This document shows, one piece after another, positions 9,940 through 17,100 of a stretch of 64,000 bases of DNA. The stretch lies in assembly GCA_907165135.1 (NCBI GenBank), contig OU015569.1, forward strand, positions 5,580,001-5,644,000, in the 5' to 3' direction. The notes beneath the pieces are model-generated. The model searched no databases and was not told the origin of the DNA. It saw nothing but the letters and a program-made list of their open reading frames with translations. Made by a program: the position numbers and the translations under genes. The stretch comes from Oikopleura dioica (Eukaryota; Animalia; Chordata). Positions within the stretch are counted from its first letter, which is position 1, and every line of letters starts with the position of its first letter.

Positions 9940-10751
9940 ATGTCCGTCACTGCCCTAGAAGAAGTTTATCAAGAGCAAAGAGTGAATCTGACGATCATTA
10001 ACGATCTCAGCGAGAACGAACGAGTATCGGTTTCGTATGCTTACAGTGATGGCGAACTGTTCATTGACTTTCCCGAGGACTATCCAGAGGAATCGCCACT
10101 CTTCTACCCTAAATTTGAGAAGCTGGATGATCAAGTAATCGAGGTTATTTTGAAAACTAGCTGGGAGAGATTCAAGAGCGACACCTTTAGGCTCGATAGA
10201 TTGATGGAAGATTTTGAGCAGTCATTATTGCCTGGTAGGTCGATTGAGTTCATACTCAAACTATAATCATAATGTTAGAATTACGCCAGGAGCAACTTGC
10301 GTCAGCAGAAAGTAGAAAAGCAAAAGAACAGACTGCAACAAAACCACACGAAGATGATGATATTGAATACGAAAGTTCGAAAAAGTTACCAAAAGCAGTA
10401 CCCCCAAACAAAAACGAAAAACCGAAAAAAGTAAAGAATCCAAAGCTGAAAACGGCAGAAGATGTTATTCGCCGAATTCAGTGGGACGAACAACTAGACT
10501 CCACAGAGTTCATCGTCGGTTATGTAGACCGCTTTGTCGGTCTTCAAGAAAAACAATTCGACGAGTTTTCATTTAAAAATTTCGTCGATGTTGATTTTGA
10601 AAAACAAGAGTTTGGCGTGCCCCAGCATAGGATTCAGTATTTCAAGTGGAGAGGGCACATTGTTTGGGACAAGACAATACGTATGGACTACATCTTTGGT
10701 TCTGGCAACTCCGACAAAACCATTTTCGAACCTGACTTTGAATTCCAATAA
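9940..10751 (+). CDS. RWD-like domain fused to MJ1316/DUF504 (LENG9-type) domain
   Basis: N-terminal LFIDFPEDYPEESP (RWD YPxxxP motif). C-terminal AEDVIRRIQWD...FIVGYVDRFVG...PQHRIQYFK..G.IVWDK. One GT-AG intron at about 10235-10278. Confidence 0.75.
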
Positions 10752-10924
10752 ACACTTTATTGTGTGATACATCGAGTTAGAGGATGATCCAGGGGACGCA
10801 TGCATCGAATCAAAGATGAACTAGGAGATATTAAATGAAAAGTGGGAGAAATTACTTGCTCCACTTTAAAAATAGCGTGTCAAGTCACTGTTTTCTACGA
10901 AAACGAAAAAGCAAACGGAATTGT

Positions 10925-11086
10925 GCAAATAGCAAAAAATATTCAGAGAGTCAGTGTTGATATGTTCACCGAGGTCGTGCCTTCTAACCTTAGTTCTGTA
11001 CTTGGATATAAAGGAAGCCTTCTGCGCACTGAAGATTGACGAATTTTGCCATTTATTAGGTCACATACAACTGATGTTTCAGCTTT
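10925..11086 (-). ncRNA. Candidate small RNA (left-arm copy), unannotated
   Basis: An exact 22-bp copy of the SL upstream element lies at 11141-11162 on the minus strand, at SL-like spacing. The unit ends in ATTTTTTG at the edge of arm homology. Confidence 0.3.
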
Positions 11087-11291
11087 GATTTTCTAAAAGA
11101 ACTTGCTAAAGACGAATTTCCAGGAAGACGTGTTGTGATCTTCGGCCTCTTTTCAGAAAATCAACCTTTCTTCCATCCCCATCAAGCCAGAAGAATCACG
11201 CGTGAAGGTGGACTGACGGTGTCTGGGTAGTTCGAAACATGAATCTGAGTAAATAACTTGCTATAAAATGTACCTTGACAGAGCCATCATC

Positions 11292-11410
11292 GCTTAGCGT
11301 CATACCGCGTAGAATAAACCAGTTCTCGTCCGATCACTGAAGTCAAACTACGACGGGCGGGGTTAGTACTTACATGGGTGACCGGTTGGGAATACCTCGT
11401 GCGCTAAGCA
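11292..11410 (+). rRNA. 5S: 5S rRNA
   Basis: 119 nt with GCTTAGCG...CGCTAAGC terminal stem, internal GTTAGTACTT..ATGGGTGACC..TGGGAATAC, followed by TTTT terminator. Confidence 0.95.
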
Positions 11411-11593
11411 TTTTGATTTTTTGCAAGGAAGGATCATCCTTTTGCCTTGCAAGCCTGCTTTAACATCATATTTCTTTAGAATCGGGTTATCTGTGGTTGA
11501 AAAAAGTCAAAATGTTAGTGTGAGGCAAGTACTGAGAGTGGAGCTTGCGTTGCGGGCGGCGTGGCACTTGTGAAAAAGCGCCCTCTACCGCGC

Positions 11594-11615
11594 GATTTTC
11601 TGAAAAGAGGCCGAA
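11594..11615 (+). promoter_or_regulatory. PSE-like upstream element of the SL RNA gene (GATTTTCTGAAAAGAGGCCGAA)
   Basis: Lies at -75 to -54 of the SL start. Present 4 times in the palindrome: 11141-11162 (-), 11594-11615 (+), 12751-12772 (-), 13204-13225 (+). Confidence 0.55.
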
Positions 11616-11668
11616 AATAGGAGCGCGCAGCGACAAAACGACCTCGAAATCAAGCACCCCTTCTCTTT

Positions 11669-11765
11669 ACTCATCCCATTTTTGAGTCCGATTTCGATTG
11701 TCTAACAGGTAAGAATCGTCTCCATGCCTACTCTCTCCTACCCCTCTCGCCTCTTACAAACGGAA
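11669..11765 (+). ncRNA. SL: Spliced-leader (SL) RNA gene (3' end approximate)
   Basis: ACTCATCCCATTTTTGAGTCCGATTTCGATTGTCTAACAG (40 nt, the O. dioica SL as I recall it) immediately followed by the donor GTAAG. Confidence 0.93.
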
Positions 11766-12111
11766 AACAAGGAAAGCACAAGAAGGGGAGATTCCTTTGA
11801 CGCGCTTTTTTTAAGGGACTAGGCCGAGTGAGCGTCGCGCGCCATTTTCTCACTTTCGCCAGGAAGCCCGAATTTTTTATTCGAATTTAATAAAATTTGG
11901 CATACAAACTAAACTTCTTATTCTCTTTCTTCTCCGACTTTTAGAATTTTCATATCTTGCCGACGAGCTGAGTTATGATCGAAAAACAGATGCTTGAATT
12001 CACGTGTACATAAGTACTTGAAATATTCGGATTGAGACTTTGAGACCAAGTCCACTGAAAAGCCCGTGGTCTCTTCTACAAAGTCTACTAATTGAGATTT
12101 CCCGGAAACGT

Positions 12112-12246
12112 CTATTTACCTGATTATCGAGGGATTACTGTGGGTCACCTGGAGCGCTCGGCGTGAAATGCGGTGTTTTTGCACTATTGGCACGCGATTC
12201 CCGCTGCGCTCGACAAGATCACCTGGATTACCTGCGAAGTTATCAG
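12112..12246 (+). ncRNA. Divergent U1-snRNA-like sequence in the palindrome spacer
   Basis: TTTACCTG, GGTCAC, TTTGCAC, GCGATTCCC..CTCGAC and a terminal CTGCG hairpin, in U1 order and at roughly U1 spacing. No canonical Sm site. Confidence 0.4.
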
Positions 12247-12600
12247 CAAACAATTCACTTCCAGGAAATCTTAATTAGTAGACTTTGTAGAAGAGACCAC
12301 GGGCTTTTCAGTGGACTTGGTCTCAAAGTCTCAATCCGAATATTTCAAGTACTTATGTACACGTGAATTCAAGCATCTGTTTTTCGATCATAACTCAGCT
12401 CGTCGGCAAGATATGAAAATTCTAAAAGTCGGAGAAGAAAGAGAATAAGAAGTTTAGTTTGTATGCCAAATTTTATTAAATTCGAATAAAAAATTCGGGC
12501 TTCCTGGCGAAAGTGAGAAAATGGCGCGCGACGCTCACTCGGCCTAGTCCCTTAAAAAAAGCGCGTCAAAGGAATCTCCCCTTCTTGTGCTTTCCTTGTT

Positions 12601-12697
12601 TTCCGTTTGTAAGAGGCGAGAGGGGTAGGAGAGAGTAGGCATGGAGACGATTCTTACCTGTTAGACAATCGAAATCGGACTCAAAAATGGGATGAGT
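12601..12697 (-). ncRNA. SL: Spliced-leader (SL) RNA gene, mirror copy
   Basis: Reverse complement of 11669-11765. Confidence 0.93.
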
Positions 12698-12955
12698 AAA
12701 GAGAAGGGGTGCTTGATTTCGAGGTCGTTTTGTCGCTGCGCGCTCCTATTTTCGGCCTCTTTTCAGAAAATCGCGCGGTAGAGGGCGCTTTTTCACAAGT
12801 GCCACGCCGCCCGCAACGCAAGCTCCACTCTCAGTACTTGCCTCACACTAACATTTTGACTTTTTTCAACCACAGATAACCCGATTCTAAAGAAATATGA
12901 TGTTAAAGCAGGCTTGCAAGGCAAAAGGATGATCCTTCCTTGCAAAAAATCAAAA

Positions 12956-13074
12956 TGCTTAGCGCACGAGGTATTCCCAACCGGTCACCCATGTAAGTAC
13001 TAACCCCGCCCGTCGTAGTTTGACTTCAGTGATCGGACGAGAACTGGTTTATTCTACGCGGTATGACGCTAAGC
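12956..13074 (-). rRNA. 5S: 5S rRNA, mirror copy
   Basis: Reverse complement of 11292-11410. Confidence 0.95.
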
Positions 13075-13279
13075 GATGATGGCTCTGTCAAGGTACATTT
13101 TATAGCAAGTTATTTACTCAGATTCATGTTTCGAACTACCCAGACACCGTCAGTCCACCTTCACGCGTGATTCTTCTGGCTTGATGGGGATGGAAGAAAG
13201 GTTGATTTTCTGAAAAGAGGCCGAAGATCACAACACGTCTTCCTGGAAATTCGTCTTTAGCAAGTTCTTTTAGAAAATC

Positions 13280-13445
13280 AAAGCTGAAACATCAGTTGTA
13301 TGTGACCTAATAAATGGCAAAATTCGTCAATCTTCAGTGCGCAGAAGGCTTCTTCTATATCCAAGTACAGAACTAAGGTTACAAGGCACGACCTCGGTGA
13401 ACATATCAACACTGACTCTCTGAATGAACATTTTTTGCCATTTGC
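13280..13445 (+). ncRNA. Candidate small RNA (right-arm copy), unannotated
   Basis: Starts 55 nt after the PSE-like copy at 13204-13225. 5' hairpin AGCTGA-AACA-TCAGTT; ATTTTTTG at 13430-13437. Confidence 0.3.
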
Positions 13446-14144
13446 GAGTTTTCCGGAAGAGAACTCATTTTAGGAACTGGGGAACGCAATGACGTCCTTC
13501 TAGATAAGTTTCTAGATTTTCTCCACAGATTCCAAATATGTTTGGTGTTCTGGGATTTTAAATGAGCAAGTGGGTGAAATAAGTTGCACCGACTTAAGAA
13601 AAGCACGTGCTTTGACGTAATTAACGTGTCAATTACTAAAAAATTTTCTTTCTTCAGGATTTAGATTTACTGCTCCGTGTGGAGCTACAGAAAAATTCAA
13701 ATACTCATAAGAGTGTCCCTCTCCACGGAATTCTTTAGTAAAAGGCGAAAGAATTATACGTTTTGAAGAGAGACCAGAGCTGAATGGTCAGTGGCCTGAA
13801 AGAATCCCAAATCGGCCGCCGCAAAGTATCATTATGGTGCGCGAGCTCGCCAAAAGAAAATCGATTCTTAGCTTAGATGCTTTTGACGGGAAGTTGTAGA
13901 AGAACGACAATTTGTTATTTCACCACGAGGATATAGAATAACATTTTGTGGAAATTCTTTTTGATAGCGGAAGCAGAATGATATGGAGAAGTGTGCTCAT
14001 CGTCAATTCTGAAGCGTCACTTGCATTTGTTTACAATATGCGGCATATTATATGCGAAGGGAAAATATTTTCTAGTGAATGAATATTAAATCCCGCAAAA
14101 CAATTGAGCCTTTGTCGATCCCTCTGGTCAGAAAGAGATAAAGT

Positions 14145-17100
14145 ATGATTTTACTTTTTATTTTGGTCTTTGTTTCGTGGGCGAAGATACACAAGACGAT
14201 AAGAATCGGCGATGATCAGGGTTATGAAGGATTCGTGATTGGCATAAGCAATACTGTAAAAAGGGACTTGAGTTTTGTCGCTGGAATGAGTGATAAGTTC
14301 ACACGCGTTTCGAAGGAATTGTGGGACTCTTCTAATGGGAGAACTTTCATCAGTGAGATAACCATAGTCCTTCCTGAAAATTGGGAAGAGCCGACTGAGG
14401 AAGAGATAGCGCAACACTCACTGAATTATCGAGGGCCAGTCTCAGGACTAAGCTTCGATCGAATGGCGATGCAGGTTCATCATGCGACTGACGACTTCAA
14501 CCCACACAGAATGTACGCGATTAAAGTGACTCCCTGTGGTCATTTCGGCAAGCACATTCGCGCCACTGATAACTACATCAAGAAGTCAGACGACGCAGAT
14601 GTCGTTGAAAGGCATGGACGCTTCGAAAAGGTCTTCGTGCGAGAATTTGCAAAGCTTCGATGGGGAGTTTTCGACGAGACAGTTAACAAAGATAAAGATG
14701 AGTACATTTTTGACAGTGAAAAGAACGAAATAATACCTGCAAAATGTTCGCGTGGGCTGATTGGAACGCACGTCTACAAGGCGAATTTCGATGCAGAAAA
14801 TACAAAAGCGGGCGACATCTGTGAAGAAGCCTCGCACAAATACCACGGAAAATGCCATTTTATTCCGAATAGCGATCAGACTCCAGCGGAGGGCACGAAA
14901 GCGCCCTGGATCGGAAGCTTTATGTACAGCACTGCTGTTAAAGATATCAATACATTCTGTCGCGACAGTACCAACGATGCGCTTGGACACGAGTGGCGGC
15001 CGAACACAATTCACAATAAAGAGTGCGATAAAAAATCAGTTTGGGAAGTAATTACGAATTCGCCAGACTTTCAGCAATTTACTGACAGCGTTGATCTGGG
15101 CGAACTTAAAATTAATATTGTTCGAGACACAGCAAGACGAATTGTGCTAGCTATCGATATGAGTACGTCGATGCAACTACCCGGACAAACTTACGATCGA
15201 TATTTTGCTGTTAGAAAAGCAGCAGTCCAATTTTTAGAAACAGTTTCTTTGGGGACATATATAGGTAGTCTTTACTAGCAATTTTTCAATTGAACTGTCA
15301 ACAATTATAGGCTTGATTTCTTTCGACAAAGGATCGCGTGTGCATTCAGAACTAATGAAGATTGAAGATGAAGACAGCCGCACAGTTTTAATCAAACGAT
15401 TGCCGCGAAAAGAAGACCTTGTCCGTGGAACCTCTATTGGCGCTGGAATTCTTACGGCAATAGAAGTTCTTGAAGAGACTGGTCCTGAGGATCTTAGAAA
15501 TCATGGAGGCGAGATTCTTTTGATTACCGACGGAGCGGAAACTGTAAAACCTCATCTTTCAGATATTCTCGAAAAGGTTTCGTCCTCGGGTGTTACAATA
15601 CACGCGATCTCACTAGGCTCCGAAGCTCTTTATGGCGTGGAGATAATAAGCGAAGAAACTGGAGGACTAGGAATTTTCACTCCTGCAACCGTCGACTCCA
15701 GAAACACCATGAACGTCAATCTACAAGATGCTTTCAAGCAGCAGTTCAACGGCGAAGGCGAAACCTTGACTGTTAGCTCAGAAGCAATTGATCTTGAAGA
15801 CGAGCTGGAAATACCATTCGTGCTTGATGACAGCATCGGTTTAGGAACCAGGGCTGGTAAATTCGCGTCCTAAATTCTGTCGAAAATTTTTAGTGCGCTA
15901 AAATTAGTGCGCGAATTTATTTTGTCGAGACTTTTAGCGACTTTCGCGTGCCTTTCGCGTGTGTCTCGAAAACTGTCGAAAATAAGGGCTGCTGATTGGC
16001 CCGCCAATGAGCGCGGGCTCTTTAATTCTGAAGACTACGTAAGTTTGAGAATTTCAAACTTCGTTTGAACTAGAATTTCAAAAAGTTTGGTTTTAATAAA
16101 GTGGACAGGGTAATCAAGGGCGTGAATTTCTAATATGAAGTCAAAAAAGACTTTATTAATCCATTTGTTAATTTTATTTATAAATATGAAGAAACAAATA
16201 TAGCCTATATTATATAAGGAAAAATATATTTTAACTTTTGTTTGCAACTCTTTCTGTGCTGGATTTGAATGATAAGCTTAGACTCTTCGCCTAAGATTAG
16301 CTTTCTTAGGGAGGTCTTCTCCCTAATTTTTTTTCTTGAAGGGCCATCCGCAGCTTGTTCTTCCTGCCTTTTCCCTTTCTTGCCATTCGTCTTCTTGTCG
16401 TCGTTCGACAACTTATCTTCGATGTCCTCAATAGTCTGAAGCTGGAGCAGCTTTGTGCAAATTCATAATATAATTCTTTATTAACAAAATCAAATTTATT
16501 TTATAATTGAGAAGGGAGATCTTCTCCCAAGTTCATGCTTAGATTATAATAATATAAATACAATATAAATATTATAATATGAAACATAAACAACTTTGAG
16601 AGGAGTTCTTCATTAGCAGTTATCAACTTAGCGTGAATTTGGGAGGAGACCTCCCTTCTAAATTATCAAATAAATATGATTCTGTGAATAGGGAATTATA
16701 TAAAGATGCTCAGAAGAGCTCTTAGACCTCGAAAGTAGAACGTATCAGTCAAGGCTGCTCTAGCTTCCTTGAGGACAGCTATGAGAAGTTGTCGGACGAC
16801 GACAAGAAGAAGAAAGGCAAAAGATGAAGAAAAGCAGGAAGATCCAGCTGCGGATGGCCCAGCGATAAAAAAATAGGGAGAAGACCTCCCTAACAAAGCT
16901 TATCTTAGCTCATCATTTAAATGCTTGACAGAGAAAATTTCAAACAAAAGTTGACTTTTATTCTTTTCAACTTATTTGTTACTAAATAAGAAATTTTTTT
17001 TAATTAAATTGTGTCATATTTACGATGCATTCAATGATGATTAAAAGTTTCAATTTGAAACTGCGAAAAAGTTTCAGTTTGAAGAAATTCTTCCCTGATC

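Follow-up and report, generated by a model that had tools for sequence, protein, structure and literature searches.

A 5S rRNA and spliced-leader RNA gene palindrome of Oikopleura dioica centred on a foldback transposon

The subject of this analysis is a palindrome in a 64,000-nt stretch of Oikopleura dioica contig OU015569.1 (the window; coordinates are positions in it unless a genome contig or a fetched locus is named). We confirmed that the palindrome is genuine and consists of two mirrored units, each with a gene for 5S ribosomal RNA (rRNA) and a gene for spliced-leader (SL) RNA, and found that its centre is the core of a dispersed foldback transposon, named here MITE-A (MITE, miniature inverted-repeat transposable element), and not a gene. 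The locus is very probably a dispersed 5S/SL inverted repeat that is centred on MITE-A and whose arms are kept alike by gene conversion. In a preliminary description of the sequence, a gene resembling U1 small nuclear RNA (snRNA) and a new RNA, both within a trans-splicing cassette, would have been the addition to what is known; the U1-like and cassette parts of that description were not upheld.

Two mirrored arms around a transposon core

A repeat search returned a single large inverted repeat in the window (10941-12124 / 12242-13425, 1184 nt, 99% complementary), in agreement with the two arms of about 1185 bp around a unique spacer that had been described. Alignment of one arm to the reverse complement of the other placed the limits of homology at 10925/13445 on the outer side and at 12107/12258 on the inner side, leaving a unique centre of 150 bp (12108-12257) where 151 bp had been given. 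Each arm was said to hold a complete 5S gene and a complete SL gene, and this was so: RF00001 was matched twice at full length, and the exact 40-nt O. dioica leader, followed by GT, was found in both arms, on the same strand as the 5S gene and downstream of it. The same 40-mer is given as the spliced leader of O. dioica in bioRxiv 10.1101/353979. The 5S and SL genes of each arm point inward and the two units are convergent, so that gene positions and strands bear out both the proposed 5S to SL linkage and its orientation. The 3' end of the SL RNA gene (~97 nt) was set at the point where conservation among loci ends. Each of the two convergent units comprises 5S, a ~258-bp spacer with the SL promoter and the ~97-nt SL RNA gene, the 5S rRNA being presumably transcribed by RNA polymerase III (Pol III) from its internal promoter and the SL RNA from an snRNA-type promoter. 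The core of the putative SL promoter motif was present upstream of every SL copy examined. As had also been proposed, the repeated unit exceeds 5S and SL, since the arms further contain an outer segment, X, and half of MITE-A (Table 1).

The genome (64,281,565 bases in 19 contigs; genome coordinates are given as C1, C2, C4 and C5, and fetched loci as L0xx) was searched with a 166-bp probe of the centre, which yielded 25 matches at 79-100% identity. All of these loci contain the inner ~200-300 bp of the palindrome arm, mostly on both sides and inverted, and no 5S or SL was found within the ~1.5 kb fetched on each side of the matches, the window's own copy excepted. Fourteen complete copies of the element, with discrete ends and unrelated flanks, were delimited; their length ranges from 737 to 1024 bp, 13 of the 14 measuring 737-753 bp and the remaining one (L005, 1024 bp) carrying an internal insertion. 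The terminal inverted repeats read GGGAC[CT]..GCCGA at one end, with the complement at the other, the element's own arms are 86-99% complementary, and the copies form two subfamilies. TTAA was present on both sides in 14/14 complete copies, as read from the flanks; beside the window copy it lies at 11811-11814 and 12552-12555, the right flank there being a mirror copy.

Arm-to-arm alignment showed 1080 bp without any difference (11014-12093). At the outer end the arms differ by substitutions at 10931, 10984, 11011 and 11013 and by a 4-nt indel at 10940, and at the inner end they differ at 12094 and 12103. Thus, the identity of the inner segments that had been reported stands, but divergence is not restricted to the outer ends. 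In successive bins of 100 nt, starting at the outer end and moving to the centre, the counts of differences are 8,0,0,0,0,0,0,0,0,0,0,3. Two other 5S/SL palindromes gave 9,0,0,0,0,0,0 (L049) and 3,0,...,0,1 (L038). The window substitutions at 10984, 11011 and 11013 all fall within the outer 89 of 1169 bp (P ~4e-4 under uniform placement), and the inner differences, 12094 and 12103, are left/right asymmetries also found in the MITE-A copies L002 and L004, and are therefore inherited and not new. In addition, the changes private to the window MITE-A, which comprise a 7-nt deletion and several substitutions, occur symmetrically in its two arms, as do those of the L002 and L004 copies in theirs. 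Given the clustering of differences at the ends and the symmetry of private changes, homogenisation from arm to arm is well supported, and the pattern of differences supports gene conversion as the homogenising process. Such conversion would keep the arms near-identical while seldom reaching their ends. An identity gradient fitting intra-palindrome gene conversion had been suggested before; it agrees with differences confined to the terminal bins and with the symmetric private changes, but the gradient is found at both ends, and the inner one is the inherited asymmetry of the transposon.

5S/SL palindromes elsewhere and a second transposon family

The window locus is one of the dispersed 5S/SL inverted repeats of O. 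dioica. This arrangement is known from the literature: in this species 5S and SL occur as inverted repeats, with 27 copies of which 22 are inverted (Bliznina 2021, PMC8008620), and a passage of that paper credits the inverted arrangement to Ganot et al. 2004 (Mol Cell Biol 24:7795). The window palindrome is among the ~27 copies / 22 inverted copies already counted in the Okinawa assembly. Consistent with this, our probe matches at C4:8487563-8488040 and C4:8879280-8879733 agree with the query chr1:8487589-8879731 of Bliznina 2021 (PMC8008620). The papers cited here on the O. dioica 5S/SL inverted repeats give no description of the content of the palindrome centre.

A 551-bp probe spanning 5S to SL gave 45 genome matches, mainly convergent pairs, and 30 fetched 5S/SL loci were annotated with pieces of the window locus. 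These loci have three parts in common: the 5S gene, at 97-100% identity; the SL-proximal ~130-190 bp of upstream sequence; and the initial ~94 nt of the SL gene. A 54-nt piece of the X-to-5S stretch recurs upstream of 5S at several of them, and the whole 257-bp 5S-SL spacer aligns in just two other loci, at 78-82%. No positional match to X, to most of the X-5S stretch, to the inner arm or to the central spacer was found in the other loci, and beyond a short 24-nt piece the segment following SL is not common to them either. Fifteen palindromes were examined; the pairs at C4:8878489, C4:12013432 and C1:14488831 were not examined in full. The convergent layout of the window palindrome recurs at the 14 other loci; there the arms span 549-1078 nt, are 95-100% identical and enclose centres of 44-453 nt. 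Several arms start 0-60 bp from the 5S start. We also considered that the whole palindromes might be transposons with ends of their own, and rejected this: their outer boundaries vary by locus, with no common termini or target duplications.

A second transposon family was also recognised. MITE-B is a ~600-bp element with a 169-nt terminal repeat and termini that begin GACGCGCTTTTTTAAGG; its terminal repeat has at least 77 matches genome-wide, typically as inverted pairs ~500 bp apart. In a fifth U1 gene of the genome, a 592-bp MITE-B interrupts the sequence and is accompanied by a duplication of 3 bp, AAT (L060:1600-2191 / L061, C4:6603540-6604297), which indicates that MITE-B is mobile and able to hit snRNA genes. 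MITE-derived sequence, mostly MITE-B, was found at the centre in 14/15 of the palindromes examined, L055 alone being without it, and its extent ranges from complete, multiple or nested MITE-B down to a ~69-nt fragment in two loci. In three palindromes (window, L030 and L043) the flanks mirror each other right up to the MITE termini. L030 (L030:1882-2914, C2:5493110-5494904) is a 5S/SL palindrome 97 kb upstream of the one in the window, and each of its two SL genes is cut at nt 72, precisely where one end of a central MITE-B lies; both SL copies are probably dead. A cut at nt 72 on both sides does not result from a single insertion into an existing palindrome, and argues that arrival of the transposon preceded the mirroring of the flank or the symmetrisation of the centre. 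That a transposon lies at the axis, and does so in nearly all of the 5S/SL palindromes examined, is possibly new.

Further features of these loci were noted. The arms of several palindromes (among L047, L035, L055 and L045) begin 0-20 bp from the 5S start, and a TATA-like box lies ~25-30 bp upstream of 5S in other palindromes. Another 5S/SL palindrome, L068:1-1951 (C4:11763200-11765150), was missed by the 551-bp probe; its arms, of at least 947 nt and 100% identical, enclose a 44-nt centre, a MITE-B of which nothing but the two terminal repeats is left, and its SL is without the first ~9 nt of the leader in both arms. At L028, from ~2010 onward (C1:13335770 region), a run of N directly follows the SL gene.

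Several points weigh against the view that the palindrome is a 5S/SL repeat built around an ordinary mobile element. The first ~105 nt of the MITE-A core (12113-12215) are ~80-90% conserved between the two subfamilies, better than much of the arms, parts of which are at 50-70%, and the last ~45 nt are not conserved; an RNA or a protein-binding site in the core is possible. An autonomous partner with ends matching MITE-A was not found. Two piggyBac-type transposase matches (PF13843) were recovered, at C1:539284-540003 and C5:1088671-1089363 (L067 and L066), one with two stops and the other open, and that in L066 lies inside a 3.25-kb element whose 60-nt terminal repeats are unrelated to MITE-A; with ends unlike those of MITE-A, both loci were rejected as its partner. 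The ends of MITE-A are GGG...CCC, not the canonical piggyBac CCC...GGG, its putative TTAA target duplication is deduced from the flanks, and its superfamily assignment derives from TTAA alone. Finally, the palindrome is known from assembled sequence.

The last point bears on the possibility of an assembly artefact, in which a foldback or chimeric nanopore read, or a mis-join at the hairpin, would have mirrored a single X-5S-SL unit. In favour of this, the symmetry axis lies on an element able to form a hairpin, and nanopore reads underlie the assembly (PMC8008620). Such an artefact is nevertheless barely credible: it would not account for four substitutions and a 4-nt indel between the arms at the outer end, for a centre that is a complete and correctly asymmetric MITE-A, or for the recurrence of this architecture, with other centres and other arm lengths, at 14 or more further loci, and the inverted arrangement is credited, in the passage of PMC8008620 mentioned above, to Ganot et al. 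2004, long before the assembly.

Table 1. Features of the palindrome and its immediate flanks (positions in the window).
Feature	Position	Strand	Remarks
Left palindrome arm (X, 5S, SL, MITE-B stub, left arm of MITE-A)	10925-12107	.	arm alignment
Right palindrome arm, mirror of left	12258-13445	.	arm alignment
MITE-A, TTAA-flanked foldback non-autonomous element	11815-12551	.	737 bp; termini GGGAC...GTCCC
MITE-A own arms	11815-12107 / 12258-12551	.	~295 bp each; inner quarter of each palindrome arm
MITE-A asymmetric core, the unique centre (spacer)	12108-12257	.	150 bp
5S rRNA gene, left	11292-11410	+	Rfam RF00001, 97 bits, model positions 1-120; T-runs after gene
5S rRNA gene, right	12956-13074	-	Rfam RF00001, 97 bits, model positions 1-120
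SL RNA gene, left	11669-11765	+	leader 11669-11708, GT donor at 11709
SL RNA gene, right	12601-12697	-	mirror of left; leader 12658-12697
Putative SL promoter motif, left	11594-11615	+	reads GATTTTCTGAAAAGAGGCCGAA in gene sense; 53 nt upstream of SL start
Putative SL promoter motif, right	12751-12772	-	motif of right SL gene
Second copy of SL promoter motif, left arm, outward towards X	11141-11162	-	exact 22-nt copy; 0 matches expected by chance
Second copy of SL promoter motif, right arm, outward towards X	13204-13225	+	mirror of left copy
X, left copy	10932-11124	-	~195 nt, T6 end; conserved segment, candidate small-RNA gene
X, right copy	13242-13439	+	mirror of left copy
MITE-B 16-nt terminal stub abutting MITE-A, ending in TTAA 11811-11814	11799-11814	+	identical to MITE-B termini in L030, L031 and L060
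Mirror of MITE-B stub (TTAA 12552-12555)	12552-12567	-	sequence comparison
Degenerate MITE-B right terminal repeat just outside right arm	13487-13610	+	sequence comparison
Short MITE-B terminal fragment just outside left arm	10840-10882	+	sequence comparison

U1-likeness of the centre and the outer segment X

The preliminary description took the spacer for a U1-like snRNA and the outer ends for a further RNA (X), both co-selected with 5S and SL. We consider this highly unlikely. No match to the U1 covariance model (RF00003) was found at E<=10 in 10400-14000; the same model identified four canonical U1 genes elsewhere in the genome, at ~115 bits. Local alignments of the centre to the organism's own U1 scored 15 and 17; the corresponding shuffles averaged 15.6 and 15.2, and 319/500 and 106/500 of them did as well. 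The folding z-scores of the centre, -0.4 and -1.2, were nothing unusual. What speaks for a U1-like gene is a 9/10 match, TATTTACCTG, to the U1 5' end, where the sequence that recognises the 5' splice site is ACUUACCUG, at the arm/core border (12113-12122), together with the relative conservation of the first ~105 nt of the core and, for the outer ends, the exact copy of the SL promoter motif and the T6 end at X. In MITE-A subfamily 2 the site of the 9/10 match reads ACTTATCCG. On the other side, the core is part of a dispersed repeat with TTAA flanks, and the remaining copies of this repeat are without 5S or SL in the sequence fetched around them; the centre seen here is in none of the other 5S-SL loci, and X is in one, at a different position. 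The spacer is therefore part of a transposon and not a U1-like gene, and a co-maintained trans-splicing RNA cassette does not fit with SL loci that lack the outer and central parts, an outcome that the preliminary description had itself named as a refutation.

Other candidate signals were traced to MITE-B. An apparent Pol III-type promoter with a proximal sequence element and a TATA box ('PSE + TATA', GTGGGTGAAATAACTTGC..TTAAAAAAGCGCG), shared by both flanks and the region upstream of the X copy on C5, is actually the outer ~40 nt of the MITE-B terminal repeat. Weak Rfam matches to plant miRNAs (MIR7504 and others, below gathering score) sit on MITE-B hairpins and are not meaningful.

X was found in three genome copies, two in the window and one in the centre of a 5S-SL palindrome at C5:13.10 Mb. 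That X by itself is a genuine small-RNA gene of ~160-195 nt with an SL-type promoter motif, within a palindrome otherwise as we describe it, is a possibility about which we remain doubtful. Over ~170-200 nt the window and C5 versions share 74-75% identity, each has a T6 end, and the sequence just outside X does not align between the two loci. A hairpin was read from the alignment at the same position in both, despite the change in sequence. In addition, the motif that lies 53 nt upstream of every SL gene recurs ahead of the window X as an exact 22-nt copy with sharp boundaries, and its spacing would place the start ~53 nt downstream. Against a gene, Rfam was blank for both versions, RNAalifold gave no compensatory pair (on two independent sequences only) and the folding z-score was -0.44; the C5 copy has no such motif and lies enclosed between MITE-B ends. 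Moreover, the 14-nt core of the motif occurs at ~9 non-SL sites genome-wide, compared with ~7 for a control pattern, which argues that it is not a general promoter mark. Comparison by eye with U7, U2, U3 or other box C/D RNAs, a telomerase template and a second SL provided no fit. X is a reasonable candidate for a small RNA, and may be an undescribed one that is co-regulated with SL.

The surroundings of the palindrome are as follows. To its left lies an open reading frame (ORF) with an MJ1316 domain (RNA cyclic-end recognition; 10272-10751, +), and to its right an ORF with a CLCA N-terminal domain, from a CLCA-like gene (14145-15278, +). The 3.4-kb gap between these two genes is occupied by the palindrome and a full-length U5 snRNA gene (13670-13782, -; RF00020, 85.6 bits in Rfam), which lies outside the arms, at a distance of 225 bp from the right end of the palindrome. 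The 3' end of this U5 gene is separated by 60 nt from the end of a MITE-B terminal-repeat fragment.

Proposed origin and comparison with known systems

The order of events that we favour is one in which a foldback transposon would have landed downstream of SL, the flank being then mirrored, or symmetrised, around its hairpin. In the window, MITE-A is seated in the terminal TTAA of the MITE-B stub, and two histories could have led there. MITE-A may have entered the end of a MITE-B beside one 5S-SL unit, the flank being mirrored afterwards; this order predicts the orientation that is seen in the MITE-B remnant outside the right arm. Alternatively, MITE-A may have inserted into an existing MITE-B-centred palindrome, the asymmetric remainder of which would then have been lost. 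More generally, we propose, as a tentative but plausible model, that foldback MITEs (MITE-B genome-wide and MITE-A here) land by snRNA-type genes, that their hairpins seed the mirror duplication or re-symmetrisation of 5S-SL, and that conversion keeps the arms identical. The MITE centres in 14/15 palindromes, the mirrored flanks and the cut SL genes of L030 all point in this direction.

The events could also have taken place in reverse, a spacerless 5S-SL palindrome of 2 x 886 bp having existed first and MITE-A having inserted into a TTAA at its exact centre. Removal of MITE-A and one TTAA does leave a perfect palindrome, and a TTAA would have been available at the axis. We regard this order as unlikely: a perfect palindrome of this size is unstable when it has no spacer, an insertion precisely on the axis would call for targeting of a cruciform, and the L030 SL genes, cut on both sides by MITE-B ends, argue that flanks have been mirrored after insertion in the O. 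dioica genome.

An origin seeded by a transposon at the axis is concrete and testable, and would apply to a palindromic layout that has been noted since 2004 and for which we found no explanation in the literature. The locus would illustrate, naturally and on a small scale, an inverted duplication that was seeded by a hairpin and whose arms then evolved in concert. It also calls for caution in annotation, as the 150-bp centre and the flanking promoter-like motifs are parts of transposons.

Like the published O. dioica 5S/SL inverted repeats, the window locus has 5S then SL on one strand and a head-to-head pairing of units; it differs from them in having the longest arms examined (1183 bp), which include X and half a transposon. 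In the nematodes C. elegans and C. briggsae, the SL RNA gene is also linked to 5S rRNA genes (PMC7986045). The physical linkage is alike in nematodes and O. dioica, but the arrangement is tandem in the former and one of dispersed palindromes in the latter. The nematode SL1-5S rDNA repeats are ~1-kb tandem arrays at one locus.

MITE-A resembles the TTAA-specific piggyBac-type MITEs in being small, with no coding capacity expected, and in having inverted termini with TTAA on both sides and a dispersed distribution among unrelated flanks. It shares long inverted arms with foldback elements. It departs from piggyBac-type MITEs in its GGG...CCC termini and in its unusually long arms (~295 of 737 bp), and no matching autonomous element was found for it.

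For the mirroring step, a precedent is the Tetrahymena rDNA palindrome, where the folding back of a short inverted repeat leads to a mirror-image copy of the flank. Foldback inversions primed by DNA hairpins are also described for S. cerevisiae in a passage of PMC7467729, and the mirror-copied flank of that description fits the O. dioica flanks, mirrored up to the MITE ends. The O. dioica case differs from the yeast inversions in that it is deduced from end products, with no intermediate or polymorphism observed.

For the maintenance of the arms, a parallel is provided by the ampliconic palindromes of the human Y chromosome, which are homogenised by arm-to-arm gene conversion. Like the window palindrome, they have near-identical arms and a unique spacer, but the window palindrome is a thousand-fold smaller, carries RNA genes in its arms and has a transposon as its spacer.

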